A program made the translations under genes and the position numbers. A stretch of 64,000 bases of DNA from Penicillus capitatus (Eukaryota; Plantae; Chlorophyta). This document shows, in pieces, positions 5,067 through 33,114 of the stretch (position 1 is the first letter of the stretch; every line of letters begins with the position of its first letter). Location: positions 1,178,001 to 1,242,000 of the forward strand of contig OZ287700.1 of the NCBI GenBank assembly GCA_965649825.1, in the 5' to 3' direction. The notes beneath the pieces were generated by a model. The model worked only from the letters and a program-made list of their open reading frames with translations. It was not told the origin of the DNA and did not search any database.

Positions 5067-7724
5067 TTATGCGCCATGTTCTTCATTCGTTCCTGTGATG
5101 ATATTCTCGAAACTGGCTCCTCCAGGAATCATAGGCAACACGTGTTCGATATGCGGTACCATCACATCCAATAGATACGGTCCAGGCGTATCTAACATCT
5201 TCCGAATGGCTCCTCTCAACTCCTTAGGATCGATCACTCTTGCTGCTGGTATGTTGAACGATTGCGACATCGTCACAAAATCCGGATAAATATCATCGAT
5301 AGAATGCGTATCGTGGAAAGCGGCATCCCTCTTGCCCAAGTAGGTATGACCGCGATTACTCTATGAAAAGACACAAGCCTTTGGTGCAACAACGAATGTC
5401 AACTAAGTACCTCATAGAATCTGTCTTCCCATTGCACCACCATTCCCAGGTGCTGATTGTTTAGGATGAGGACCTTGAGATTGAATTTTTCAATGTAAGC
5501 CACGGCCATCTCTTGAACATTCATCAAGAAGGAGCCATCTCCGTCGATGTCTACAACGACTTTGTTCTCGCGGCCATTCTTTCCATCGAAAGCGGCTGCT
5601 GCGCCCAGGGCAGAGGGCAATCCAAAACCCATGGCGCCCAATCCACCAGACGTCACCCACCGTCGAGGCTTAGTAAACCCGTAATGCTGAGCAGCCCACA
5701 TCTGATGCTGACCCACACCCGTCGTGATAATAGCATCTCCATTTGTCTCTTCATAGAGCATCTAACAGAGCACATCTATCGCACACATTCGCTTACTGAC
5801 GCCTCACTTGGATCGCCATCTGCGGCAAAATAACACCCTCTTCTTCAGGGAATGTGAGAGGGAATTGCTTCTTCTGCTCTTTCAGTTCCTCTCTCCAGCT
5901 TTGGAACTGCTGTGCACTGATCGATTGATCTTTAATCATAGAATTAAGCATTTGCAATGCGGGCTTAGCGTCTGCACACACTGGAATGTGTGCATGCTTG
6001 TTTTTGTGAATCTCTGCTGGATCCACATCTATGTGAACAATCCTTGCATGCGCTGCAAAGCTCTCCAGTTTCCCCGTCACACGATCATCAAACCGTACAC
6101 CCACAGCCAATAGAAGATCTGAATGGTGGACGGAATAGTTCGCATAGACAGTCCCATGCATGCCCAGCATCTTAAGCGAAAGATCATCTTGGAGTGGATA
6201 AACACCCAGTCCCATCAAAGTCTGGGCAACAGGAATGCCAGTCAACGACACCAGCTCACGTAGCTCTTCATATGCATTCAAGCATCCTCCTCCACAATAG
6301 ATCACCTGTGGCATTCCTGTATCGATTGCAGATTTGTAAAAGACATGTTACCGGTTTCTTAGATTGCTGAATGGCCTTGAGGATTTTCTTGATAGATCCT
6401 GGACGTGGCGGCTGCGGCAAACGGCTCATGTATCCTAACACACTACCATCACTCATAGAATTGGTCAAAGCTTATAACCACGCCTGAGATACGCATGCTG
6501 CTGAGCCAGTCTGGAACAGCCATGGATTGCTGGATATCTTTCGGCACATCGATGAGTACGGGTCCTGGTCTTCCTGTCACATCAATATCTCATCTTTATT
6601 TCCTCGGCAACGTCCCCTCTTACCTGTGCTTGCTATGTAGAACGCTTCTTTAACGATTCTGGGAATATCATTGACATCCTTGACCAGGTAATTATGCTTT
6701 GTGATTTGACGGGAGACCTCGACAATCGGTGTCTCCTGAAACGCATCTGACCCAATGAAGCGTCTGGGTACCTTTGTTGCATACATCGCATGAGAATGGC
6801 CTTTTGGCAGGACCTCCTCACCTGTCCAGTAATGGCTACGATGGGCACACTGTCCAATAGCGCATCAGCCAATCCCGTTACCAAATTTGTGGCACCTGAA
6901 CAGCAATCCACATCTCCTGCCACTCTCCACAGACAAGACCTGGTCCAGAAGTGGCAATACAGACACCGACTCTTCCAGTAACCTTTGCATAGCCTTCAGC
7001 TGCAAAGATCTCTCCCTGAGACACACCCATTCCCGCACACATTCCAATGTGGAGCATGGATCGATGTGACAGACCTGTTCGTGACGGCACAGGACGTTAC
7101 GAATGCCATTGCTGCGTGTCAGAGCTTGATGAATCTCCATCGAGGCCCCTCCGGGGTAAGCAAAAACGGTGTCGACTCCTATTTCCTCGCTCTCAATATC
7201 ATCGATCTATTTTGAGCGACAGGGACCTTCTCTTTCCAAACTCTGTATGAGGATGTCGCATCCTTTCCGTTCTTTGTCTCCATAGCGATCGACCCATTCC
7301 TTAGCATCCTCGCCGTGCAGTGCAGCCTGGGCTGCCTCTTTGGCACGTTGCAACTATTTGTGCAGCACAGGGTCATGGGCAAACATTCGATTCATTAAGA
7401 TTTCCACCTCCGCTTTCATCGCTCCCTTTTTCTCCTCCGTTAGTTTAGCACGGACAGCGATCGCTCCATTGTTTCTTCTCCAGCGACCCCTTCACAGCAA
7501 CGGGCGATCGAGGAGACATGAGATTCGTTGCTTACGAAGCGGAGCGTGTCAGTTTCGGCCGGCGACCCAAGAACCGACAATAGCGCTACACAGGATTGGC
7601 CGTATTCCAGTCGATGTTGAGGCACAAAGGCATCTCGCTTGTTCGTTCGTGTACATACCTTTGATGTCAGTCCTCTATTCGGAGCCGTGGCAATCGGCAT
7701 TGCGATCGAGGATGGACCACCCAT
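5067..7724 (-). CDS. ALS: Acetolactate synthase large subunit, plastid-targeted (12 introns, one GC-AG)
   Basis: Motifs [67 protein letters not shown] (TPP-binding), [10 protein letters not shown] and HVLPMIPGG; Arg/Ser-rich transit peptide. Confidence 0.97.
6435..6483 (-). other. GC-AG intron in ALS (TCAG|GCGTGG...GTGTTAG|GA)
   Basis: Only this junction restores [14 protein letters not shown]; the nearby GT donor is in the wrong phase and produces a stop. Confidence 0.85.
6574..6584 (-). repeat. Intron-terminal motif TGATGTGACAG (ALS intron 3' end)
   Basis: The identical 11-mer ends introns at 11545-11555 (-), 26236-26246 (+), 31567-31577 (+) and 37238-37248 (-). Confidence 0.9.
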
Positions 7725-7905
7725 CACGACCCACGTCTCCTTGGCGACAAAACGACGGATTCTATCCTCGATGCGAAGCAATCAAATTTCGCGTTTTTGT
7801 CGATTTCGCGATCGACGTTCTCAACACTTTTCTGTTTGTGCGCTGCGTCTGTGTGTCTCTCTCTCCGTTGTAAATTTTCTTGGCGTTGCGACGTCACGTT
7901 TGTTC

Positions 7906-10058
7906 ATGTTTCGCGTTGGAGAACGTCTTCCAGGGGACAAAGATGCGCGACATAAGTCGAGAAGGAAGGCCACTCGCGTCAACGCCACAGAACACGTACC
8001 TCACCCGACGGGCATCTTCCCGAACCCGTCAACGTTCCAGAATTTTGGAACGAAGGAAGCCGACGCTCTTGCTGACGCGTTGAGAAGACTCTCGACGGAA
8101 GGACAGCCGACTCGATATCAAACAAGGCGTCGTCGAGCCTTACGCTCTCGTCGACAAGGTCCGCCACACAATCCCGATACAAAAGTGTGAGAAGTGTGAT
8201 GTCCTTAGCATCATGGGTATCGAGGGTACAAAGATGGGATCCGGATGAGAGTGGGGAACTGAGAGAACGCGTGTTCTTTGCCGAAGGGAAAAATGGAAGA
8301 GGCCATATAAAGCGACGACAGCGAATGGTCAGGAGACAGAGCAAAAACAATGAGGCCTCTGCAGAGAATATGTTTTACTTTGAAGACTCGCCCGACAGGC
8401 GAAAACCGACGAGAAATGAAAATCGCGCCGATCTGTCCACGTCTACGGCCACTCAGATGTTGCAAGAGTACATTCAACGTTCCGAGAAGCTAAAGACAGA
8501 AGGCAATGAGGCATTGCGTCGTGGGGATTATGCCAAAGCAGAGAAGCTGTACTCAGAAGGGTTGCGATGCGTTATGGGGAATCGAGTGGAATGCCGCCAG
8601 CTCGTTTCGGCATTGCTGACCAATCGAGCAGCGGCCTATATGCATCAGTTCAATATTCCGCAGGCGATTATCGATTGCCGCGAGGCATGGAAGATCTGTC
8701 CGAAGCATATACGTGCTTACACAAGGGCTGCTACCTGTTACGTCCGACACGGACAATTCCAAAAATCAAAATCGATACTGGAAAGGGCACTGCAGATGCT
8801 CAATGCCTCCGATCCGCAATTCCGAACGATTCAGGAACAGATGCGTCTCACTCTCCGACTCAAGCAGCAAACGGAAGAAGTGAGCGCTCGTTGTGCGGAG
8901 GGAGATGTCGATGACGATCTGCTGAAGACACTAGAAGACCTCTCTGACCATATGCAGTGCTGTGAAAAAGTCTGGAAATTGGAGGCGCTGACATGTCTCC
9001 AATCTAATAAGTTTACCAAACTGGACAACGTTTTCCAGCGTGTTCAAGATCTCTTTCATGTTCAAGAGACGACAGATGCGAACCTGCATTGCTGGTGGCA
9101 GTGGATGCGAATGGAATCGCTGTGGTGGAATCCCCAACACGCACTCGATGCTGTGCTCCAACAAATTCAGCAAGTGCTCGAATCGATGCAATCTCGATCT
9201 CTGACAGAGTTGGAGACCACTCCACAGACAGAGGCTCTAACACAATCGGTGTTGCAATGCCTCATGAACCAAACGCGTTTGGCCAATGTGAAGAAGGATG
9301 CTGGGAATCAAGCAATGGCCCAAAGAAACTATGATCAAGCCTATAAACGCTATTCTGAGGCCATTGTCTGCTGTGAAACGGCAGGCAGTCCTGCGACTTT
9401 TCTTTCTGTGCTTTACTGCAATAGAGGCGCAGCGCTGCATGGCTCTGGGTGTTACATCGAAGCCATGGGAGACGTCTGCATTGCCATAAGCCTTTATCCC
9501 CACTACGCCAAAGCGTATTTAAGACTTGCCCAGATGCATGTCGAGACATTCAATGCCGCAGCAGCTGGAGAGATTCTGAATGCCTGTCAGGCTCAATGTG
9601 TTCAGCTGTCGGCACAGGACAGTGCAAGTGTCTGTTCCCTCAGATCGACCATCAGCCGCCTGGAAAGAGCATCGCACAAACTGGATGCCTACAAACTCAT
9701 GGGCCTGTCGAGACACTGTCAGAATTCGGCCGTCAAGAAAGCCTTCAAGAAACTCGCTCTGAGGTTACATCCAGACAAGGCCGCCCATGCCGTGAAGCTG
9801 AACCTGAGCTGGATGAAAGAGAAGCCGCCTTTTGTCAAGGCTGCCGAAAAGCACATCCGCGATGCATTGCATGATCACATGCAGCAGCTCTTCAAGCTCT
9901 TGAATGGTGCCAATTCTGCCCTGAGTGATCCTCTTTTGCGTGGAAAGCTCGATCAAGACCTGCACCGTACGGAAGGCGCCTCGCATTTCCACCCCAACCA
10001 TTCTCCCTCCTACCGTCCCTACCCTTCTGGACCTTACGCTTACTATCATGGTTACTAA
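7906..10058 (+). CDS. TPR-repeat and C-terminal J-domain co-chaperone (DNAJC7/TPR2-like); one intron at about 8188-8234
   Basis: TPR motifs (LKTEGNEALRRGDYAKAEKLYSEG, NRAAAYM, KDAGNQAMAQRNYDQA, YCNRGAAL) and a J-domain with RLHPDK; upstream exon joined via a GTGAGA...AAAG intron. Confidence 0.9.
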
Positions 10059-10156
10059 ATTGAAAGAATGCCTTCTTATGCAATAAGGGAACGACAATTT
10101 TTGTCAGCCGTTGAAAGGACCGTCTGCATTGTCTGAACAACAAAGGTAACTAACTA

Positions 10157-12403
10157 CTAGAATCGCGTCGATGATATTTCCTCCGATGCCTTATTGAGAA
10201 GCTTGAGTCTTTGAAGGCACTGGGCACGACGCCGTGTGACATCTGGATCTTCATGCAACAAACGAGAGAGCTCCTCTTCGTCTTTTGATGCGACCTCTTC
10301 TTGCAAGGAATCCAATATATTATCTTTGGCCTTCATCACCTGCACATAATATTCTTTGACTGAACCTGTCATTTCATATTATGCGCGTTTTGGACTTGAG
10401 AATGGACAATGGCTTTCGGGATGGTGTTGAGGAGCTGACGCCGAACGAAGTTAAGATAGGCCGACACCTGTGAAGCTATTTTCTTCAAATAGACGGCGCC
10501 TGTCACACCATCTGTATTCTCAGAATCGATATCCCTCCCCGAAAGCGTCCTGAATTCTCTCAAAGCGATCCTCGCTTCTTGACTGGTGCCTGAACGGCCC
10601 TGAAGTTCGATGATGTGACGGAAGATGTTCGCCGAGAAGTAAGAGGCCTCCATTTCTACCAGCGTCTTCACAATGTCACGCGAGTCATTCTTCAATGACT
10701 CCAGTCTTGTCACGGCGGCGTTTGTGATCTCTGTGCTCAACGTGCCATACTTTGACAGCATTCTGCAGAGCTCTGTCTTCATCGCGAGTTCAATGGTCTC
10801 GAGCAGAATGCGATGAACCTCTTCCACGGCTGACTGTGCTGGATCTTTCATAAGCTTCAGGCCAGCTTCCAGCAAACGACGATAACCCATTTCAGGTGCA
10901 ATTAAATGTGGACGAATGCCATCGGCTTGGCTAACGATACGGCGGACGTTGTCGATGTTGAGTACCTGCTCGAACGGTAACTGATGCAGCTCGCCATGAA
11001 GCTTCTGTTCGAAGACTTCGAGGATGCGCTCGCCGCCGCCCTTACCACGATCGATCATCTCTGTGTAAGATGTCTCAAACTCACGGCAGCGCTTCAGAAT
11101 GAAGTGAACCATCTTGCCACGAGAATCCATAACAGAGCTGCCCAACACGGCCAACTCCTTCTCGATATTCAGGATACTGCAGAACACACAGGGAACCGTA
11201 GGTCAGCACAGAGCGAGGGCGTTAGGGATACGGACTCTTGCTTAATGGATGTCTGCAGGCCAGGCAGGGCCCGTCGAACTTCATGCAGTAGTCGATCGCT
11301 GAGTTTTTGTGACAGAAAGGCGGTTCCCACATTTGGCAAATCTGAATAGTCGGCAGAGCTTTTGAAAAATTCTTCTTCCCTTGCTCGGGCGGACTGCATG
11401 TTCATCTTGGAGTTGATGTCTTTCTGCCCTCGGTTCACGACACCCACCCATCCGTTCCTCAATCTCAGCTGCTTCGACTGCAGGATGTCACGGACACTCG
11501 TTCCTGGGTCCATAATGTCGATCTTGGTGAGCACACCGATTGTCCTGTCACATCACTGAGATAGGCAGAGATCATTAAAGATCGGATCGCAGCAGCACCG
11601 TTCTCCGTTTGGATCAACGTCCCTCGCCATGCGCAGGGCATCAGAGGTGGCCAAATCTGCATTGGCAGGTGAGACGGCAAGGATGATGGCGTTTTCTCCC
11701 TTGATGTAATGACGGACCATATCGTCGATTTCTTTGACGATGGATCTTGGTTGACCATCGATGGGGACTTTCGTCAATCCTGTTCCATACATGACAAATG
11801 ATCATTTATAATCGCATGTTTCGCAGGGACATCAGCTGCTTACCTGGCATATCTACAAGCGTCAGATGCGGAACGTGAGGAGAAGTGACAGTTAAGAAAA
11901 TCGGCTCGGGCGATACAGCTTTGTGTGATAGATTTCCCAAATGCCGAACAGTTTCATCTTCGATTTCCTGGCGAATTTGATCTGCACACGATCACCAGAC
12001 CTCACTCTATCGTACGGTCACACTTTTCACCCTCTTACCGAAATCTGTGTAGCGGCGGCCCTTGGCATGCATAAATTCGCCAGCCTCATCTGCGTCTGGA
12101 TCGTCCAGGTGAATCAGGTTGAGGACGAGTGGTCGACGCGTCACGATTCCTGTCCCTCGTGGCAGAAAATCGCGTCCCACGACAGCCTCCAATACAGAAC
12201 TCTTTCCGGAACTCTAGACACAAATGTGTGACGCATCGTCGAGAGAAAGAGTGAGGAATGTCTCTCACTTGGCCACCAATGACGACGATGCTTGGCAAAC
12301 GGTCCCATAGACTGGGAAACGATGAGTTCTGTCCTCCAATGCCATCGCCGAGAACGGCAGCAGCGTTTTGCAAACGCGTGACGAGGGAGATAACATTATC
12401 CAT
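10157..12403 (-). CDS. DRP1: Dynamin-related protein, DRP1/phragmoplastin-type (6 introns)
   Basis: GTPase motifs [30 protein letters not shown] and TKID; middle domain; C-terminal GED ([15 protein letters not shown]); no PH or PRD domain. Confidence 0.93.
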
Positions 12404-12524
12404 TTCGCGAAAGCGCAATACTCAACAAACACGACACAATACGCGAAACTCAAATTCGAAAGTGAATGAATATACGCACACGGAGCGACAGTGTTGATTA
12501 TTATACGGTGCCTTGAGGGAGTTG

Positions 12525-14223
12525 ATGCGACGGACGGGATGGAGGCGTTTCTTGGAAGCTACGACAGCACGGAAGACGGGGAGACAGAAACAACAACGGG
12601 TGCCGTTCTCACCCATACAACGTGCTCTTTCTCAACATCCATCCGTAAGAAGGCAGTCGACGCACTACTATCTCGTCAAAAAGAGTGAGACAGGTCTTGG
12701 TCGAAGAATCGGGATTCCTCGGCGTTCTCACACTTAACAGGTCCAATTCCATTCTCGGGATGACGTGTGATGACATCTTCTGCTCGGCAGGCCTCAGAAA
12801 CTCAACGCATTGAATCTTGACATGGTGGGATGTGAGTGTATGTGTTGAGGACCTCGGCAGGTCCGTGTTCAGGTAACGCGAATGGGACAGAAGATCAAAG
12901 AATGGGCGCATCGGGATCATCCAATCCGGACCATTCTGATCAAGGGAAACGGCAGAGTGCGTTACGCTGTCTTATCTCTCTGCAGCAAAGCTCTCAGGCG
13001 TTTTGCAGCGGAGGGGATGTGAAACACATCACTCAGCGCAGTTCTGTCGGCGACATCGAGACAGGTCGCGCCTTCTTCAGAAAGAATTACTGGCTGGATT
13101 ACACCATATCGCAGCTCGAGAAGCCGTGTGTGGTGCTGATGGATGGAATCACTCATGGAGGTGGGTGCGGCATCGCCATGCATGCATCGCACCGTATCTG
13201 CACCGAAAAGTGAGGCCCGAAATTATAACGATGTAAGAATGAGCATCGTCTCAGTACCGTATGGGCGATGCCCGAGACCAGAATTGGTTACTTTCCGGAT
13301 TGCGGATCTTCTTTCGTTTTCCGCAGAAGCGATCGAGTGGGTCAGAAATGGGGATTGCTCTATGCCCTGACGGGAGAGGCCGTACCATCGCCCGTAATGA
13401 AACTATGACGACACTCTCTGATCTCGTCTGACCTGTACTCGCTGTAGGACATGGTGCCCTACGGAATAGCAACACACAGAATTCGATCGGAAGAGTGGTC
13501 AGCGATCGAGACCAAACTCAAAGAGCACCCCGTCGATATTTCCACCCTCTTGCACAGCCACGCATGCCCTCCAGTAAAACAGCAGTAGACGGAGGAGATG
13601 TCGATCTTGGGTGTCGTGTGCTTAGCAAGTCGAGCACAAGGAGGCACCTCTGAGAAGATGGGTCATCGATGCATTGACGACCCATGGGTACCAAGAGGCT
13701 GGAAGTGTGATCGACATGATCGAGCATCTCAAATCCTTATCATCTGCCAAATCTTCGTCCCTGTCCTTTGTGGAGAATCAGGAGAACATAAACGGGGATT
13801 CCATGAATAGCTTTCTGCTCAGAGATTTCACAAAACGCATCTTGGAAAGCATCGAGCGGTAAGAACACGTGCGGAATCAAACAAACAACGTATGGGCCAA
13901 TTCCAGGGCCTCTCCCCTTTCGTTGAGCATCACTTTTGAGTTACTGAAAAGAGTGAGAGATTCGGAAAGCCTCGAGCAATGCATGCAGAGGGAATGGATA
14001 CTGTCAGACAGTTTCCTTCGTCTGCCGAGCGATTTCATTGCCGGTGTCCAGGCGCAGCTGATCGATAAGGGCACACCCAAATGGAGATTCCCGTCCCTCG
14101 AACAGGTAACGCTTCTCGCTTGCTCATGACTCCATCCGTCTCGTTCAGGTGGATACGCGACTGGTGCAAGAGTTCTTTCGTGGCAGAGATGGTGTTGATC
14201 TTGATGTGACGTCTGTCTTGTAA
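12525..14223 (+). CDS. HIBCH: 3-hydroxyisobutyryl-CoA hydrolase-like protein, mitochondrial (9 introns)
   Basis: Spliced LTLNRPQKLNALNLDM, KGNGRAFCSGGDVK, MDGITHGGGCG, WAMPETRIGYFPD, ASPLSLSIT and DFIAGVQAQLIDKG; Arg-rich N-terminal presequence. Confidence 0.92.
14219..14223 (+). terminator. TGTAA poly(A) signal overlapping the HIBCH stop codon (TTG TAA)
   Basis: Sequence ...GTC TTG TAA; the signal includes the stop codon. Confidence 0.5.
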
Positions 14224-14241
14224 ACAGTCTCTCCCTTCCGT

Positions 14242-14646
14242 ATGCCGCTCTATGCGTTGTTCTGTCTGTTGCGTCCGACACTCACTAAGCCGCAAAAGGC
14301 CGCCGCCATTAAACACAGTGCCATGACGGTGCTGAACAACGACGGCATTGTGACGGATATCGTATCCCATGGCACCTATCGTCTGGCCAAAGCCATCAAG
14401 AGCGGCAATGAACGCTTCACAGATGTCAGCGTCCTCCGGAAGCTGCCTGGAAGCTGAGAATGTCCTATGCAGGCAGCGATCTTCGATCTGCACTTCTTTG
14501 TCAAGACGGAAGTGCTGAAAGAAATGGAGCACGACCTGCGCGTTGACGAGAATGTGATGCGGTGGGTCATCCGAAAACGCCCTGCGATGGCAAAGCTGCC
14601 GGACATGAGAGCTCTGTACAAGGAGGTGGTCGAACTCCAGAGATAA
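14242..14646 (+). CDS. RPS6: Mitochondrial ribosomal protein bS6m (one 48-nt intron)
   Basis: MPLYALFCLLRP...HGTYRLAKAIK...HFFV...EMEHDLRVDENVMRWVIRK matches the bS6 family; the MPLY start is typical of plant and algal mitochondrial S6. Confidence 0.88.
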
Positions 14647-14653
14647 ACATCGC

Positions 14654-16446
14654 ATGATGCTCAGCATGAACGTCTGCGTCGCGATCTGTCCTCACGCAAC
14701 GAAGGCAACGTCGATTGTCCACGTCGAACGCGGCGGCGCCATTCGTGTCAACATCCAAGGCGAGCGAGAAAGACGCTATCGTTTGACGCCACTGACTGCG
14801 ACATCTGGTCCGTCGCATGCGGCGGAATGGATGGAGCGATGCGGAGAGGAAGCGATCGACGGCGTCATTCGTGGCGGCGATGTTCTGCTTCTGTCGACGG
14901 GTCAAGTGGGCCTCTCCAAAAGGGCAACCATGTTCCATCGTCCAGGCGGCATTGTTTGGCGTTTTCTCAAAAAACTCTGGAAAACACTCGAGGAGCAAAA
15001 AAGTGATGTCGCCTGCAGCCTGACGCTGTGGGAGATTCGCGATAGAGAGATACTAGATCTGTTGCGCCCGACTGGACCACCCTTCACTTCCTCACTCTTT
15101 TGTCACAGCGTGCCGCTGGCATCGATGGAGGATATTGCTGTCCTGCTGAAAGGCGCTCTCACGGACGCGCCGTCAGCGGAATGTCTATCACATCTCTTCC
15201 TGCGACTCACCATGCAGCGGAACAACAGTCTGCACAAAAGCAGTGTCTGTTTCGTGGATATGGCAGATACGCCCTTCCTCACACGCCATGCTTCCCACGG
15301 CCTGTCTTCGGAACGATGCTGTGCGATAGATGGATCCAGCGATGGCGTTGCCGACCTTCGACAGGTCAGCAGAATGATTTCCTCGATGGCGAAGCGAGGT
15401 CGCCCCCACGTGATTTCTCTCTGTTCCTGCAATAAACTGTGCTGCGATTCAGGAGTGCATGAAGCTTCGTGCGATATGGGATCTGTCAAACAACAGCACG
15501 GCATTCTGGCGGCTGAGCTACGAAAGCGTCTGGCTGACAGTATGACGTATGCCGTCTGTTCTGTGTCGGATCGGCCAGAAGACGCGCTCAATACCATTCA
15601 CACGCTTCGGTTGGCCACGCAGATATCCCGCATCCCAAATAGAACGCCATCCGAAGACGTGTTCTCGAATTCATCTCCACGCGCTGTTTTTCAGAACGCG
15701 ACGTCTTTTCCCGCAGATATCTCTGCGACATCGCAAACACCATGTCCGTTGTCTTGCAGACGGCCGGCACCCCATACGTCACATCTTACGCCTCCTTGTG
15801 CCGTCAGCGATGGGATATGCTGTCTCCACGGCGACGTGCTTTTCTCTTCGGCGACTAAGGCATCGCAGGAAATGTCGAAAGACGAAGAAGAGGGCGAAGC
15901 TCAAAGCATCAACCGGACGCTGCTCAATTTGATCGACAAGCAGAAGCGTATGCAGGACCACATGGAATGCTGTCTTGAAGATAGCAAGACTGCCAAAGCG
16001 GAAGCGCTTCTGCACAAAGAAGTGCGTTGGAGAGTAGCCCCAACTGCGAGAATCGTTCTTGGTGTTTTGTTTAGATCGAGATGGAAGAGCTGAGAATCGA
16101 GATGGAGACGCTGCGCAGCAAATGCCGTTCTTTGGAAGCGTCCTCACCCTACGCCACACAATTCGATGCCTACGAACGCGAAACCCGCACTCAACTTCGA
16201 CAGATCCACAGTCTCAAGGAGGAGAATGTGGCACTCGCCAAGCAGCTAACGGCACAGCAAGAGCGACAAACAAAGAACGCTGCCAATATGGAATCTCCGA
16301 CGCACTTCACGGCCAAAATGCGAGGCATCGCAGAAAAAAAGGTGACCCAAAGGACCATTGCTCGACTGGAGAGAGAACTGACCGCGTTGAAAGAAGAGAA
16401 CATCACACTTCGGCAGAAAGCCCGATGCTACGATTTCTTTAAGTAA
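14654..16446 (+). CDS. Divergent kinesin-like protein with degenerate motor domain and C-terminal coiled coil
   Basis: Kinesin-fold landmarks in order: NVCVAICP, GGDVLLLSTGQ, SLTLWEIRDREILDLL, FVDMAD, TIHTLRLATQISRIPN. Introns at about 15398-15451 and about 16021-16073; coiled coil in the last exon. Confidence 0.75.
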
Positions 16447-16685
16447 GATACCGGTCACACTTTTTCAGACATTCCCACTCCTGCTGTCTTTTCAGAAAAC
16501 AGTGCGGGCTATTGATATCGGAGATCAAAGCTGGCAAAGAGAGACGCTGGAGACGGGGTCCGTATTCAATGGAGACTCATTCAACATAATGCGTGGTGCC
16601 ATCCAAGATCTCATACATTTTCACAAACCGTCACACTTTTCCGCTTTCCTCATTCTTTCGCCAACGCATGTTTCCAAATGATCAT

Positions 16686-20977: not shown

Positions 20978-22908
20978 ATGGAGGTCTACGGCGCTCGATG
21001 TCTGAATATCAATGTGGGAGTGATGGGCCACGTGGACAGTGGCAAGACGAGCTTAGGTCCTCTGTCTGGTATCCCCACTCTGTGAACGCTGTCTCTCTTT
21101 TCAGTTGAGAAGCTCTCGACGGTTCTCTCAACGGCAGCACTGGACAAGCACCCACAGAGTCAGGAACGTGGGATCACACTGGACCTCGGCTTCTCTGCCT
21201 TGCGTGTGCGAAAGGGCGATAGGGAAAGGCAGAAAAGAGTGTGCGAGTGTTGCAGGTGCCTATTCCGGAGAGACTCGCGGGGGAGGGCAGCACGTATGAA
21301 TCGCTGCAGTTCACGTTGGTGGACTGTCCTGGACACGCATCGCTGATCCGGGCGGTTTTGGGAGGCGCACACATTATGGACATGATGATCCTGGTGATCG
21401 ACGTGACGAAAGGCATCCAGGTGCAGACGGCCGAATGTCTGGTGGTCGGAGAAATTTCAGTCGACAAGATTCTGGTCCTGTTGAACAAAGTGGATCTCTA
21501 TCCTCCGGAAAAGCGTGAGAAATTTGTGAGTAAAGCGAAAAAAAGAGTGATGCAGACACTCAAACTCACCTCCTTTAAGAATCCCAGAATCCTCCCCGTC
21601 TCAGCAAAAGAAGGTGTGCAGCATCCGAAAGGGTGGATGATAGGAGTGATGCTTTCATAGGCGAGGGGATCAATGAGATCATCCACGAGCTCACACAAAT
21701 GGTCGATGGCCTGCCCAGTCGACGCACTGGGCCTTTCCTCTTCGCCATCGATCACTGTTTCCGCATCAAGGGACAAGGAACTGTTCTGACAGGCACCGTT
21801 TTACAGGTCTTGTTCGGGCAGAGATCTGATCCGACACATTGGATCTCACTCAGTGAGAATGCTGTAGGGAAGTGTGACCATACATGATCTCATTGAATTG
21901 CCAGTCCTGAAGGAGTCGAGAAAGGTCAAGAGTATTCAGGTGTTTCATCAAGCTGTCACATCAGCTTCTGCTGGAGATCGAGCCGGCATCTGTGTTGCTC
22001 GGTTGGATCCATCCCGCATCGAACGTGGACTGGCTGCAACTCCCGACAGCATCCAGTCCTTCCAAGTCAGCCGTCCCGTCCTTAACGCACACTTGCTCAA
22101 GGGATTTGTTCAGATGGCCATCGCTTCGGTGGAGAAAGTGCGATTCTATGCGGACCAAGTGCTTTCTGGGCAGAAACTGCATGTCATGTTGGGACATGCC
22201 ATCGCCATTGGCAAGTTCACTTTTTTCACATCATCCACCAAGCCATCTCGTTCGTACTGCATTGGAAGAGTGTATTCGGAAGGCGTTGGTCATGTCTTGT
22301 GGCAGGGTTTGCTTTGGGCGATGAAGAGTATCAGTTCGTAGAGGAGCTTCTTCCAGACGTCACCACTACTCAATGGGCTCTCATTCAGTTCGAGGTGCCA
22401 ATGACATCGCCCGTGGAGCTTTCGTTGATTGCTGCCCGGCTCGGCGGAGAATCCGATGCTCAGCACTGCAGAATGGCATTGCATGGGAAGATTCTGCAGA
22501 CCATCGATCCTGCACAACGCGAACAACTCAAGATCTACAAGGCATCCTTTGCCTGCCACAATTCAGACCGCAGGATCTGTGTGCTGACAGCTGAAGCGAC
22601 GACACGGGATGATAAAGGCCGTTATGGATGATGGGAAGACGGCGATCTGCAGCGGCATGTTCAAGAAGGAGACAGATTTCAGTTTCTTCATCGGCCTGCC
22701 CGTATCCTGCAGCGCTTTTCTGTTGTCTCTCTCTTCTCACCATCAGAATTGTGCAAAGGTCGTTTCGGAGAGAGGCGATCGAGGGAAACTTTTACGGCCA
22801 CACGGAGGCGAGGGCGATTTCCTTGTGCTTTTTCAGAAACCTCTATTGCAGAGAACCGAGGAATACACAAACATTACACTCTTCTCCCGAAAACACATCC
22901 ATCCTTGA
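20978..22908 (+). CDS. EEFSEC: Selenocysteine-specific elongation factor eEFSec (7 introns, one GC-AG)
   Basis: INVGVMGHVDSGKTSL, LDKHPQSQERGITLDLGFS, VDCPGHASLIRAVLGGAHI, AIDHCFRIKGQGTVLTGT and GMFKKETD. Confidence 0.93.
22542..22590 (+). other. GC-AG intron in EEFSEC (TACAAG|GCATCC...GCTGACAG|CTG)
   Basis: Removing these 49 nt joins LKIYK to LKRRHGMIK, matching the eEFSec LKxYKLK pattern; the unspliced form frameshifts to a stop. Confidence 0.85.
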
Positions 22909-23034: not shown

Positions 23035-25865
<2,831 letters not shown>

Positions 25866-25957
25866 GGCCAACGTGTCGACCGGGAAATCGGAAACGCAAA
25901 CGTCACATCAAAGTCGATCACCCATCGCACGTCATTTTGGACTTCGGGTTGTGAAAA

Positions 25958-26295
25958 ATGCCACCGCTGAAGTCGATTCGATTGAAGGAAGTGGTCTACA
26001 CGCTCAGTCCCTTTGAGCAGTCGGTCATGTCAGGGCTGTGGAAACACGGGCCGACGAACTTCCTCCACACTGTCAAAGAAGTGAGGCTATCGCTAGACAC
26101 ACGTGTATATCGGCGAGGGTCCTTCTCGAATGGTTCCGCTGTAGAAAGGCTTGAAGATCAGCGTCTTTGGCCTGTTTCCTTTCTTCGGAACCGTCTGGTG
26201 CGATCCCACTCTCGGCCCTTGCGATCGAGGCGATGTGATGTGACAGGTATGCCCAGAACTACAAGGAAAAGGAGAAACTGGCCAAACGTTACTGA
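25958..26295 (+). CDS. QCR8: Cytochrome bc1 complex subunit 8 (2 introns)
   Basis: MPPLKSIRLKEVVYTLSPFEQSVMSGLWK...VWYAQNYKEKEKLAKRY* has the plant/algal QCR8 motif VVYxLSPFxQ. Confidence 0.9.
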
Positions 26296-27958: not shown

Positions 27959-30900
27959 ATGTCCGATTCAGATTCTGACGATTTGGCCTTCGGTGACGAA
28001 GCCGATGCGTCGTCGCCGCCACCTGTCGCAACGAATGCTCCTCCGATGGAGGACGTTCAGGCGCAGGTCCCGCTGAAGATGTCGGGAAGAGGACTGGGAC
28101 TCGAATACGTCCCTGTCGATCCGGAAGCGCTTGAAGAGCTGCCGCAGGCACCTCAATACCTCTACCCACGTACACGCGACATCAGCGATTTCGTCTTCGG
28201 CGGAGCTGCGTCGCAGACCGACGTTACGGCGCCAAACGAACCAACTGCATTCGAAGGTGTATCCACTGCAGCAACGGAGGAACAGAGCGAGCAGGGTGCT
28301 GTCGATCGAGCGCGGGATAAGTTTCGTCGTTTTCAATCTGAGCTTTTTGATCAACGCGAGTCCCTCGATCCGCGTCTCCGAGAAGAATTTGAGATGGGAT
28401 ACAATGTGGATATGACTGCCTTGGCCGATGAGAACGTGGAGGGAGAGTTTGCCGAAGACGAGCGATGGATCGTTGTCTCTTCCTTCTTCCAAGAGAAGGG
28501 CCTTGTCCGTCAGCAGCTCGATTCTTTCCGCGAGTTCATGGAGAACACACTACAAGAGATCGTGATCGAGAACGGCGATGTTGTTATCCAGCCAGAGGCG
28601 CAGCACAAAGGAGAGGACGAGGATCAGGAAGAACTGGAATATCGCATCACGTTTCATCAGATCTCGATCAGCAAACCAAGCTTCAATGAAGTGGATGGCG
28701 ATGCCATTGAGCTCTTCCCTAGAGAAGCCCGTTTGCGGAATCTGACGTACTGTGCTCCTGTGTTTGTGGATGTCACCAAGAAAGAGATCGTGCGTTCTTC
28801 GGATGGCCACAGCAAAGAGGCGGAGACGAAAGACAATGTCTATCTCTGCGATGTGCCTATCATGTTGCGCAGCGCCTTCTGTGAGCTGAACAATTTCCAG
28901 AAAGAGGATGTGACATACATGGGAGAATGTCCATACGACCAAGGTGGATATTTTGTGGTGAATGGTTCAGAGAAAGTGCTCATTGCTCAAGAACGTATGG
29001 CAAATAATCATGTCTACGTGTTCAAGAAATCGTTGCCAAGCAAGTATGCCGTGACAGCCGAATGCCGTTCGGTGGTGGAAAAGAGCTCAAGGGTGCCTTC
29101 CTTGGTCGGCGTGCATTTGATGGCGCGTGCTGGAAGGCGAGCCGCCCTCTCAAGCAGCCCCATCCGCGCCACACTACCTTATATCAACACCGACATACCA
29201 GCCCTTGTGGTGTTCCGGGCACTGGGCTGCGTCGGCGATCTGGATATACTGGAACATATCGTCCCCGATTTTCAGGATGCTGAACTGATGGAAGCATTGC
29301 GGCCTTCCATCGAAGATGCTGAGCCTATCAAGAACCAGGAAGTCGCATTGGACTTCATTGCCAAGAGAGGAGCCGCTGTGGGCGTAGCACGGCATAAGAG
29401 AATGAATTATGCACGGGATCTACTGCAGAAGCACTTTCTTCCCCATATCGGCCTCAATCACATCGAAGTGGATGCTTCACGAAAGGGATACTTCTTTGGT
29501 TATATGATCTACCGTCTGCTGCTTGTGGCTCTGGGCCGTCGAGCAGAGGATGATCGAGATCATTATGCTAACAAGCGATTGGATCTGGCAGGGCCATTGA
29601 TGGCTGGTCTTTTCAGGCTGCAGTTCCGTCGTCTGGTGAAAGACATCCGGCGGCGCGTTCAGCGCTGTGTCGATACAGGAAAAGAGATCTACGTGCCGGA
29701 CATCATCAATCATAATCTCATCAGCAGCGGTTTGAAGTATTCTTTGGCCACTGGCAATTGGGGACAGCAAGGAACACAGAACGTGCGTTCGGGCGTCTCA
29801 CAAGTCCTGCAGAGACTGACCTATGCCGCAACGCTATCGCATCTACGCCGAGTCAATTCGCCCATTGGTCGTGAAGGAAAACTGTCGAAACCGCGGCAGC
29901 TGCATAACAGTCAATGGGGTATGCTGTGTCCAGCCGAGACACCAGAAGGCCAGGCATGTGGCTTGGTCAAGAATCTGGCCTTGATGACCTACATCTCTGT
30001 GGGCACACCTGTGGAAAGCGTTACCGAGTGCTTTGCCTCGTGCGGCTGTATGAATCTGGAAGACATTCCCACAGGAAAACTGAACCAGTTTACCAAGATC
30101 TTTATTAACGGTCGTTGGCTGGCGATGGTCGAAGAAGCGCAGCAGTTTGTCGATATGATTCGAACCCTTCGGCGTGGGTCAGAGCTGGATCCAGAGGTCA
30201 GTGTCGTTCATGATCTGTCCCTTCAGGAGATCCGTATCTACACAGATGCAGGACGTACATGCCGACCGTTGTTTATTGTCAACAACCAACATCTCCTCAT
30301 TCAACGCGAGCAGATTCTCAGTCTTGTTCCCAGAGAAGAGCCAAACGGCACATCGACGGCACCGGAGGCAAACTGGGATACATTGCTGAGCCTGGGAGTG
30401 ATCGAGTACATCGACACGGCAGAGGAAGAAACGACGATGATTGCGATGACGCCGCTGGATGTGAAGAAAGCTCGATTGCGTTCAGCACAGGCGTACTGCG
30501 ATACCTACACGCATTGCGAGATCCATCCGGCCATGATTCTGGGCGTCTGTGCCTCCATTGTGCCGTTTCCCGATCACAATCAGTCTCCAAGGAATACCTA
30601 TCAATCGGCCATGGGCAAACAAGCTATGGGACTGTATGCCACCAATTTCCAAGTCCGTATGGACACGCAAGCATATGTGTTGTACTATCCTCAGAAGCCG
30701 CTTGTGGTGACACGTGGGATGCAGTATCTGAACTTCGAGGAGATGCCAGCCGGACACAATGCCGTTGTCGCCATCGCATGTTACTCGGGATACAATCAAG
30801 AAGACTCCATCATGATGAATCAGTCCGCCATCGATCGAGGATTCTTCCGATCGATTTTCTATCGATCCTACAAGGACGAGGAGAAGAAAGTGGGATCGCT

Positions 30901-31988
30901 CATCTATGAAGAGATCGAGAAACCGGACCCCACGACAACCGCCGGCATTCGGCACGGAACCTATGACAAATTGGACGACGATGGAGTCATTCCGCCCGGG
31001 ACGCCTGTCAATGGAGACGATGTGATTGTGGGGAAGACGGCACGGCTGCCAGCCAATGAAGCACAGGAGTCCAGATTTACCAAACGCGACTGCAGCACGT
31101 CATTGAGACACAGCGAGCGAGGCGTCGTCGATGCCGTCCTCTTTAGCACGAATGCAGAGGGTCGCCGATTTGTCAAGATTCGTGTGCGATCGGATCGTGT
31201 GCCGCAGATTGGTGACAAATTTGCCAGTCGACATGGGCAGAAAGGAACCATTGGAATGACCTATGCTCAAGAGGACATGCCGTTCACTTCGGAAGGCATC
31301 GTTCCAGATCTTATCATCAATCCTCACGCGATTCCTTCCCGTATGACGATTGGACACTTGGTCGAGTGTCTCATGAGCAAAGTGGCGGCCAATACTGGCG
31401 TCGCCGGAGATGCCACCCCCTTCAACGGTATCACTGTCGACGCCATTTCTCGACAGCTTCATGAAGCAGGATACGAGCGCCGTGGATGGGACGTCCTCTA
31501 TAACGGCCACACTGGCAAGCCTTTGCAGGTCGGATACAGAATGGCGGCTTCTGTGGTCGAGTGGTGTGATGTGACAGGCGAAGATCTTTGTGGGACCGAC
31601 CTACTATCAGCGATTGAAGCATATGGTGGATGACAAGATCCATTCAAGAGGAAGAGGCCCTGTGCAGATTCTGACACGACAACCTGTCGAAGGTCGATCC
31701 CGTGAAGGCGGTCTGCGTTTCGGCGAGATGGAACGCGACTGCATTATCAGCCATGGCTGCGCCGCCTTTCTCAAAGAGCGCCTCTTCGATCAATCCGACG
31801 CCTATCGTGTCCACGTCTGCGAGAAATCCGGCCTTTTTGCCATCGCCGATCTCAGAAAGAACCATTTCTACAGTCAGATCCACGGCAACGACTCCAACGT
31901 GGTGCAAGTCTTTTTGCCCTATGCATGCAAACTCCTCTTTCAGGAGCTCATGTCTATGTGCATTGTCCCCAAAATTGAAGTGGACTGA
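27959..31988 (+). CDS. RPB2: RNA polymerase II second-largest subunit (single intron 31529-31577)
   Basis: [87 protein letters not shown] and [12 protein letters not shown]. The intron joins KPLQ to [13 protein letters not shown]. Confidence 0.98.
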
Positions 31989-32045
31989 GTGACGGACAGA
32001 TCGACGCGTCATGAGTGACAGACAGTCCTATTGTCAATGATTGCG

Positions 32046-32050
32046 TTACA
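32046..32050 (-). terminator. TGTAA poly(A) signal downstream of RPS23
   Basis: TTACA on the + strand, 15 nt beyond the RPS23 stop. Confidence 0.55.
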
Positions 32051-32065
32051 GGGCATAAGAGACCG

Positions 32066-32646
<581 letters not shown>

Positions 32647-33114
32647 ATCAACAGCGGCAGTGGCGGCGGCGTCGACGACGACGATGGGACGTCCCAGATG
32701 GCACTATTAATTTTATAACGACAATGATGACTAGTTCTGTTCAACGAACATGGGTGGCGTTCGTTAGGAGGACGCAGGTGAGACATGCATACACCAACTC
32801 CACCACAGTCCATACCCTTCCAATCCGTATGTTACCACTACCCAGTCGGGAGGGCCACTTGTGGGATATTTCTATGTGGGTTAACCGATATTGCGGGATT
32901 TGGTCAATTGATCTTTTTGTCATTCCTCAATATCTCAAACACTGCAAAGTAATTCTATAAAAACGTGACCAGACAACGAAAAGACATCGAGACAAAATAT
33001 TCGGAAAGTTCGTTCTACATGGAACCCATGCTCTCTCTGCTTTTACGTTTCTTAAGGCGGTGCTGTGACACCTGTGTGTATACAGAACGAAGACTATTAT
33101 AAACTACAACAAGC

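Follow-up and report, generated by a model that had tools for sequence, protein, structure and literature searches.

Three nuclear genes separated by 18 and 7 nucleotides: a conserved HIBCH, bS6m and kinesin-like array in a compact bryopsidalean green-algal genome

The window analyzed in this work is a stretch of 64,000 nucleotides (nt) from Penicillus capitatus (GenBank assembly GCA_965649825.1, contig OZ287700.1, positions 1,178,001 to 1,242,000 of the forward strand; window assembly ERZ25074695). It carries three genes arranged head-to-tail on the plus strand: HIBCH, bS6m, which encodes mitochondrial ribosomal protein S6, and a kinesin-like gene. The first two are separated by a spacer of 18 nt and the last two by a spacer of 7 nt. 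In both the sequence reading and the rebuilt gene models, HIBCH ends with TAA at 14221-14223, bS6m starts with ATG at 14242-14244 and ends with TAA at 14644-14646, and the kinesin-like gene has its first ATG at 14654, followed by other in-frame ATGs at 14657 and 14666. Apart from the ATG at 14657, these stops, ATGs and gaps had been given in the original prediction, and they proved correct when the sequence was reread and the gene ends were anchored by homology. The sole non-coding DNA 5′ of the array is a divergent spacer of 121 nt, a probable bidirectional promoter region, and the sole non-coding DNA 3′ of it is a convergent spacer of 96 nt, a candidate shared 3′-end region. The features of the locus are listed below, with comparisons to a sister species found in a second metagenome (ERZ26696514, contigs L001 and L002).

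12404-12524, no strand: divergent spacer of 121 nt, from the dynamin ATG (12403, minus strand) to the HIBCH ATG (12525); 86% identity with the sister species, against ~78% for neutral sequence
12525-14223, plus strand: HIBCH, 10 exons, 426 aa
12525-12644, 12694-12740, 12791-12824, 12873-12956 and 12986-13209, plus strand: HIBCH exons 1-5, rebuilt model
13255-13393, 13448-13573, 13626-13858, 13907-14105 and 14149-14223, plus strand: HIBCH exons 6-10, rebuilt model
14224-14241, plus strand: spacer 1, 18 nt, pyrimidine-rich, ACAGTCTCTCCCTTCCGT; equal length in the sister species, 17/18 bases identical
14242-14646, plus strand: bS6m, mitochondrial ribosomal protein S6, 2 exons, 118 aa
14242-14424 and 14473-14646, plus strand: bS6m exons, with a 48-nt intron at 14425-14472
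14647-14653, plus strand: spacer 2, 7 nt, ACATCGC; identical in L001 and L002
14654-16589, plus strand: kinesin-like gene, 4 exons, 591 aa, nucleotide-binding motifs degenerate, coiled coil at the C terminus
14654-15398, 15453-16021, 16075-16442 and 16496-16589, plus strand: kinesin-like exons, rebuilt model
14654-14790, plus strand: 5′ segment of the kinesin-like gene with an unusual nucleotide constraint, seen in third-position identity with the sister species
16590-16685, no strand: convergent spacer of 96 nt, from the kinesin-like stop to the cyclophilin stop; 91% identity with the sister species

All nine HIBCH introns (29-54 nt) have GT-AG borders. The Pfam domain ECH_2 (PF16113) matches residues 50-412 of the 426 over profile positions 2-335 of 335 (E = 1.8e-91) and, by this full-length domain match, the product is a 3-hydroxyisobutyryl-CoA hydrolase-type member of the enoyl-CoA hydratase family. 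The domain is preceded by an Arg-rich, presequence-like N-terminal extension of 40 residues. Exon 1 (12525-12644) contains, in both species, two overlapping open frames, one starting at ATG 12525 (MRRTGW..., Arg-rich and presequence-like) and the other at ATG 12539 (MEAFLG..., acidic); the frame from ATG 12525 alone fits the splice phase into exon 2.

The Pfam domain Ribosomal_S6 (PF01250) matches the bS6m product (2.5e-13), and the 14 matches of this protein in the PDB (14/14) are all mitoribosomal, not bacterial or plastid, the best ones being those of Polytomella (8a22_Bf, 3.6e-18) and Chlamydomonas (7pkq_f, 4.6e-15). Since the alignments to the green-algal mitoribosome chains begin at residues 1-2, the start codon is fixed; the protein has no transit peptide and falls, by the criterion of the family, among the mitoribosomal bS6m proteins. 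The first two products had been predicted to be both mitochondrial, which holds by homology for bS6m and is plausible for HIBCH from its Arg-rich extension, but does not extend to the third gene. Two other open reading frames (ORFs) around bS6m were rejected. Read-through of its stop would enter a +1 frame open to 15006, in which a hand count gave three synonymous versus six non-synonymous differences, a pattern that is not coding-like. An antisense ORF (14035-14667, 210 aa) crosses the bS6m intron, whose length is 2 nt different in the sister species, and is therefore not conserved.

The N-terminal 320 residues of the kinesin-like protein align with kinesin motor domains and are followed by a coiled coil. 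The homology to motors is weak but significant: 3e-8 for the Pfam Kinesin domain with the unspliced ORF and 1e-5 for the Kar3 motor 4h1g_A; the spliced full-length protein gave no Pfam match at E 0.01. Against the motor signatures GxxxxGK[ST] (Walker A P-loop), SSRSH (switch I) and DxxGxE (switch II), it has the degenerate sequences GQVGLSKR, SLHKS and GLSSER, respectively, all of them kept in the sister species. From these motifs, the third gene works out as a kinesin-derived pseudo-enzyme and not as a kinesin ATPase. The ECH_2, Ribosomal_S6 and degenerate kinesin matches agree with the gene identities that had been proposed. The first kinesin-like intron (15399-15452, 54 nt) is in frame and stop-free, so that ORF callers read through it and find an unspliced ORF open over 479 aa. 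However, its counterpart in the sister species is 56 nt long and would shift the frame, which indicates a true intron; if it were retained in the window species, the protein would be 18 residues longer. The beginning of the gene is unusually constrained. Its first 30 codons have identical third positions in the two species (30/30) although seven amino acids differ, compared to 22-27/30 at other gene starts and to a background third-position identity of ~0.79, and the conservation of synonymous sites spans the first ~45 codons. Three in-frame ATGs lie within codons 1-5 and are conserved in the sister species.

The RPB2 gene of the window (27959-31988) encodes a protein that shares 80% identity with its counterpart in Caulerpa lentillifera and 70-71% with those in Bryopsis and Ostreobium, compared to 64% at most for the other named green algae and plants. 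These identities place the host among the bryopsidalean green algae, closer to Caulerpa, and bear out its green-algal assignment.

Contigs L001 and L002 of the sister species are 99% identical to each other, and each of them shows ~86% identity and at least 37 kb of collinearity with the window. All exons of the three models could be projected onto L001, GT-AG borders are kept at 13/13 introns and the three reading frames are intact. Intron lengths often differ by 1-2 bases between the species and, in HIBCH, the differences are not multiples of 3. Both spacers have identical lengths in the window, L001 and L002, i.e., in three contigs from two samples, and 24/25 of their bases are conserved; the one changed base is in spacer 1, although the adjoining HIBCH stop has changed from TAA to TGA in the sister species. 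Between the species, identity amounts to 75-80% in introns and at third codon positions; at this neutral identity of ~0.78, the probability of finding at most one change in 25 bases is ~0.016. This low probability and the recurrence in three contigs argue that the junctions are not an assembly artefact. Conservation of spacer length taken alone is weak evidence; about half of the ~48-nt introns changed length. The ratios of non-synonymous to synonymous substitution rates (dN/dS) are 0.23 for HIBCH, 0.27 for bS6m and 0.34 for the kinesin-like gene, at synonymous divergences (dS) of 0.36-0.44. Therefore, all three, including the pseudo-enzyme, are under purifying selection and are working genes.

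The co-linearity of the array is conserved at the divergence of the sister species (dS ~0.4). A search for the same adjacency in related algae had been proposed; it is found, with identical spacer lengths, in the sister species, but not at a distant green-algal bS6m locus (contigs L004 and L005), where neither HIBCH nor a kinesin gene is present within contigs of 3.6-4.5 kb. L004 and L005 come from an Antarctic endolith metagenome (PMC7171226), with 59% GC and 27% identity. A profile search with the kinesin-like protein returned the same two species only; a scan of JGI metagenomes gave no match with this protein and only a distant alga with bS6m, and the neighbouring cyclophilin ORF, looked up by exact match, had no hit other than the contig of the window itself. 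Overall, these comparisons indicate a conserved and spacer-less array whose three nuclear genes are functional, within the compact genome of a bryopsidalean green alga.

Gene density is ~2.2 kb per gene, with ~17 genes in 37 kb, and the following convergent stops are close to each other.

10059-10156: convergent TPR-DnaJ and dynamin stops, 98 nt apart
31989-32065: convergent RPB2 and RPS23 stops, 77 nt apart

Other anchored spacers between same-strand genes are much longer: 209 nt from PepN to cyclophilin, ~200-320 nt from PFK to the next gene and ~720 nt from that gene to RPS23. For CDC50 and a U2SURP-like gene, the spacer was estimated at 450 nt at least, with the U2SURP-like start placed by eye, and this figure is not used elsewhere. 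The gaps of the array are at least 10 times shorter than any other tandem spacer found, among a handful of pairs, and it is the single such array in ~37 kb of annotated sequence. No further tight pair was found by manual anchoring between 4.2 and 41.5 kb, where an automated junction test missed two positive controls. The 18- and 7-nt gaps are thus outliers beyond background compaction.

Spacers of this size are too short to hold a 3′ untranslated region (UTR), a terminator, a promoter and a 5′ UTR, so the transcription units must be shared or overlapping. Judged from the sequence, an intergenic promoter is missing for bS6m and the kinesin-like gene, as is an intergenic 3′ end for HIBCH and bS6m. 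The alternative put forward in the original prediction, either a transcript with several ORFs or promoters and UTRs buried in neighbouring exons, holds almost by logic given the 18 and 7 nt.

We slightly, and only tentatively, favour nested and overlapping mRNAs whose start sites would lie inside the upstream gene. We infer every placement of RNA starts and ends given here. For bS6m and the kinesin-like gene, initiation would take place in, or just 5′ of, the 18- and 7-nt spacers, from core promoters located within the last exon of the respective upstream gene. Transcripts from the upstream genes would enter the genes that follow or cross them entirely, and might share one 3′ end in the 96-nt convergent spacer. 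RNAs with several ORFs would then be physically present, yet each protein would be made as the 5′-proximal ORF of its own short-leader mRNA.

Several considerations lead to this preference for nested mRNAs. Translation of the downstream genes from one long mRNA is disfavoured by the 28 and 11 ATGs located upstream and by the length of the upstream ORFs (426 and 118 codons), and a mitoribosomal protein needs dependable expression. Moreover, this genome already uses very short leaders and promoter regions, with divergent starts 121 nt apart and convergent stops 77-98 nt apart. Lastly, compacted genomes of microsporidia and of nucleomorphs behave likewise: in these, a transcript can begin inside the gene upstream of its own or end inside the one downstream, according to the accounts of Williams et al. 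2005 given in PMC3629993 and PMC6009652. As in the array, spacers in these genomes (microsporidia Antonospora and Encephalitozoon, nucleomorphs of cryptophytes and chlorarachniophytes) are too short for separate control regions. However, they are compacted throughout and nearly intron-free, whereas the genome studied here is intron-rich (introns of ~50 nt) and keeps other tandem spacers of 200-700 nt. The conservation of the spacers (24/25) and of the kinesin-like third positions (30/30) would be expected if start-site or downstream promoter elements, or 3′-end signals of the upstream gene, overlap these sequences. On mRNAs with very short leaders, the first AUG is often skipped. The three conserved in-frame AUGs within five codons would suit such leaders.

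Other observations weigh against nested mRNAs. Since other same-strand pairs keep at least 200 nt, this genome normally holds its promoters outside coding sequence, and the missing spacers look like the co-transcription signature of algal polycistrons. The last 30 codons of HIBCH and bS6m, where promoters would lie, show no synonymous excess (22/28 and 20/24 identical, respectively, for a background of 0.77-0.80), in what is a low-power test. In addition, a promoter or poly(A) motif for this lineage could not be defined. TGTAA is the poly(A) signal of Chlamydomonas and other chlorophyceans. In the window, none of 14 anchored stop codons is followed by TGTAA within 110 nt, and the motif is depleted overall (34 and 35 copies on the two strands, versus ~62 expected); the copy found at the HIBCH stop is TGTGA in the sister species and hence not conserved. 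TGTAA does not appear to function as a poly(A) signal in this alga. The lack of TGTAA between bS6m and the kinesin-like gene, pointed out in the original prediction, is real but uninformative for this reason. A search for k-mers enriched in the 14 3′ flanks did not reveal any convincing poly(A) signal, the best one, TTTGT (7/14), not being significant after multiple testing.

The close rival of nested mRNAs, to which we give about one chance in three, is a true bi- or tricistronic mRNA, capped and polyadenylated, on which ribosomes terminate and reinitiate at the AUG located 18 or 7 nt past the stop. The outlier spacing speaks for it, as such spacing marks the polycistronic pairs of algae (PMC7896298), and so does the conservation of both spacer lengths and of 24 of their 25 bases. 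The redundant AUGs at the kinesin-like start would be equally useful to restarting ribosomes. In both species, the ORFs opened in any frame by upstream ATGs all close before the next start codon, so that none reads across a restart site; however, this pattern, with ATG-free stretches of 35-49 nt, is about what chance would give at one ATG per ~46 nt. Of 200 shuffles of the bS6m/kinesin junction, 197 are more structured than the junction itself (z = +1.8), which would hence be accessible. The two junctions were also considered for an internal ribosome entry site-like or processing structure, which was rejected as neither of them folds better than shuffles (z = +1.8 and +0.6). Features that fit restarting ribosomes or very short leaders are thus present, but each of them is individually weak.

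Experimental precedent comes from synthetic Chlamydomonas constructs, in which an ORF 2 placed 6-10 bp after a long ORF 1 is expressed, and from the report that inter-ORF regions of a few bp help reinitiation, both from Onishi and Pringle as summarized in PMC11291117. The efficiency of reinitiation nevertheless drops steeply with the length of the upstream ORF (PMC11291117), which here amounts to 426 and 118 codons, and the synthesis of a constitutive mitoribosomal protein would hang on a rare event. The termination upstream ribosome-binding sites (TURBS) of caliciviruses and influenza B virus rely on UGGGA (motif 1), which is complementary to helix 26 of 18S rRNA. Like these and the synthetic stop-start systems, the array has stops and starts a few nt apart (7 and 18 nt), an unstructured junction and no ORF across the restart site. 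Unlike TURBS systems, it consists of cellular genes with long upstream ORFs and its reinitiation is putative. A TURBS was rejected, since the 120 nt that precede each of the two start codons contain no TGGGA, either in the window or in L001. In its strongest form, i.e., a natural tricistronic nuclear mRNA of a siphonous (bryopsidalean) alga with efficient reinitiation after two long ATG-rich ORFs, this explanation appears rather unlikely.

A polycistronic precursor cut into monocistronic mRNAs, by spliced-leader trans-splicing or by endonucleolytic processing, has a very low probability. An AG preceded by pyrimidines is present just 5′ of both starts (...tctgtcttgtaaACAG followed by tc, and ...ctCCAG followed by agataa) and is kept in the sister species. 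However, the second of these putative acceptors is part of the bS6m coding sequence and the other genes of the window have no consistent acceptor-like context. The array resembles the spliced-leader operons of nematodes, Oikopleura and kinetoplastids by its same-strand genes a few to tens of nt apart, in a compact genome with tiny introns. It differs from them in that only one array is found in ~37 kb and in that no spliced-leader RNA was detected: an Rfam scan of the window gave neither this nor any other RNA family, and a tRNA scan gave no hits. To our knowledge, spliced-leader trans-splicing has no precedent in green algae.

Still less probable is a polycistron of the type described by Gallaher et al. 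2021, read by leaky scanning past the upstream ORF or ORFs, which was the precedent invoked by the original prediction. The array does share many properties with these loci (Chlamydomonas, Chromochloris, Auxenochlorella): they are green-algal, bring together unrelated co-linear ORFs far tighter than other same-strand neighbours, keep their co-linearity in related species, as the array does in its sister, and include a small mitochondrial protein among the partners. However, leaky scanning in green-algal polycistrons goes with short leaders, a weak context of the first start and few ATGs upstream of ORF 2 (PMC11291117). Here, the spliced HIBCH ORF (1281 nt) contains 28 ATG trinucleotides, versus a codon-shuffle expectation of 22.3 ± 2.9, and that of bS6m (357 nt) contains 11, versus 9.0 ± 1.4; ATGs upstream of the next ORF are not depleted. 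Known inter-ORF medians are 212-260 nt, compared to 7 and 18 nt here, and upstream ORF medians are 444-600 nt (PMC7896298), a short-ORF criterion that bS6m fits but that HIBCH does not. As mechanism, the precedent therefore fails, and on the ATG counts leaky scanning is excluded for the array.

The least probable explanation, largely refuted, is that these are not three genes but a mis-assembly, a pseudogene array or a splice-made fusion protein: a naive ab initio parse does merge them and, in the window, a GT...AG pair (14616-14664) would create an in-frame fusion of bS6m with the kinesin-like ORF, but this acceptor AG is AC in both sister contigs, HIBCH and bS6m match full-length homologues end to end, each of the three genes is under purifying selection in its own frame and the junctions recur in three contigs from two samples.

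Outside the array, several gene models of the window were revised. A conservation-based block map proved useful, whereas a raw scan of stop-ATG junctions was too noisy and a home-made dynamic-programming gene finder over- or under-split genes. The TPR-DnaJ gene starts at ATG 8199, conserved in the sister species, and not at ATG 8325, which is GTG there. Although a 183-aa ORF (7639-8190) stops 8 nt short of this ATG, it lacks conservation as coding sequence and is a look-alike, not a second tight pair. The minus-strand region 23038-26091 is a single U2SURP-like gene with RRM, SURP and CID regions in series, which ORF calls had split into an "unknown" and a Surp/RRM gene. A gene for the selenocysteine-specific elongation factor eEFSec (21223-22905, plus strand), whose GTP_EFTU, euk_SelB_III and eEFSec_4th domains appear in the calls of the sister species, would imply selenoprotein synthesis in this alga. 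Intergenic DNA is better conserved (86-91%) than introns (78%). Low-complexity repeats of the (TGAT/TGAC/GTCT) type occupy 32900-33100, inside the ~720-nt region upstream of RPS23.

The motif GTCACACTTTT is present in 10 copies with at most one mismatch in the window, versus 1.4 expected: exact copies at 12017-12027, 16454-16464 and 16630-16640 and seven more with one mismatch. They sit in short introns, where some run with and others against the host gene, and also in the convergent spacer that separates the kinesin-like and cyclophilin genes. Of the exact copies, that at 16630 is intact in the sister species and that at 16454 has a single changed base there.

A third, more distant relative (SRR33785045, contig L008, 19 kb; RPB2 84%) has a similarly compact and partly syntenic genome. 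It shares the order RPB2...PFK...RCC1 with the window; the place of CDC50 is taken by a mitochondrial-carrier gene, ~60 nt upstream of RPB2. This suggests that the compaction is older than the split between this relative and the window species and that local rearrangements have occurred since.

Nuclear polycistrons in green algae are recent knowledge and have so far been explained by leaky scanning alone. Under this mechanism, their upstream ORFs have to be ATG-poor and are mostly short; the array breaks such rules and yet is conserved. If its genes are co-translated from one mRNA, the cellular ribosomes of this lineage reinitiate after long ORFs. Such reinitiation would be a mode distinct from leaky scanning and the natural counterpart of the synthetic Chlamydomonas stop-start constructs with 6-10 bp, and the 7- and 18-nt junctions would be ready-made parts for multigene expression in algae. 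If the mRNAs are nested, as we tentatively prefer, promoters and 3′ ends would be embedded in the coding exons of an intron-rich, free-living alga, and the array would mark a limit of compaction. Under either reading, the array is a warning that such genes will come out mis-joined or truncated from ORF callers and ab initio gene finders.

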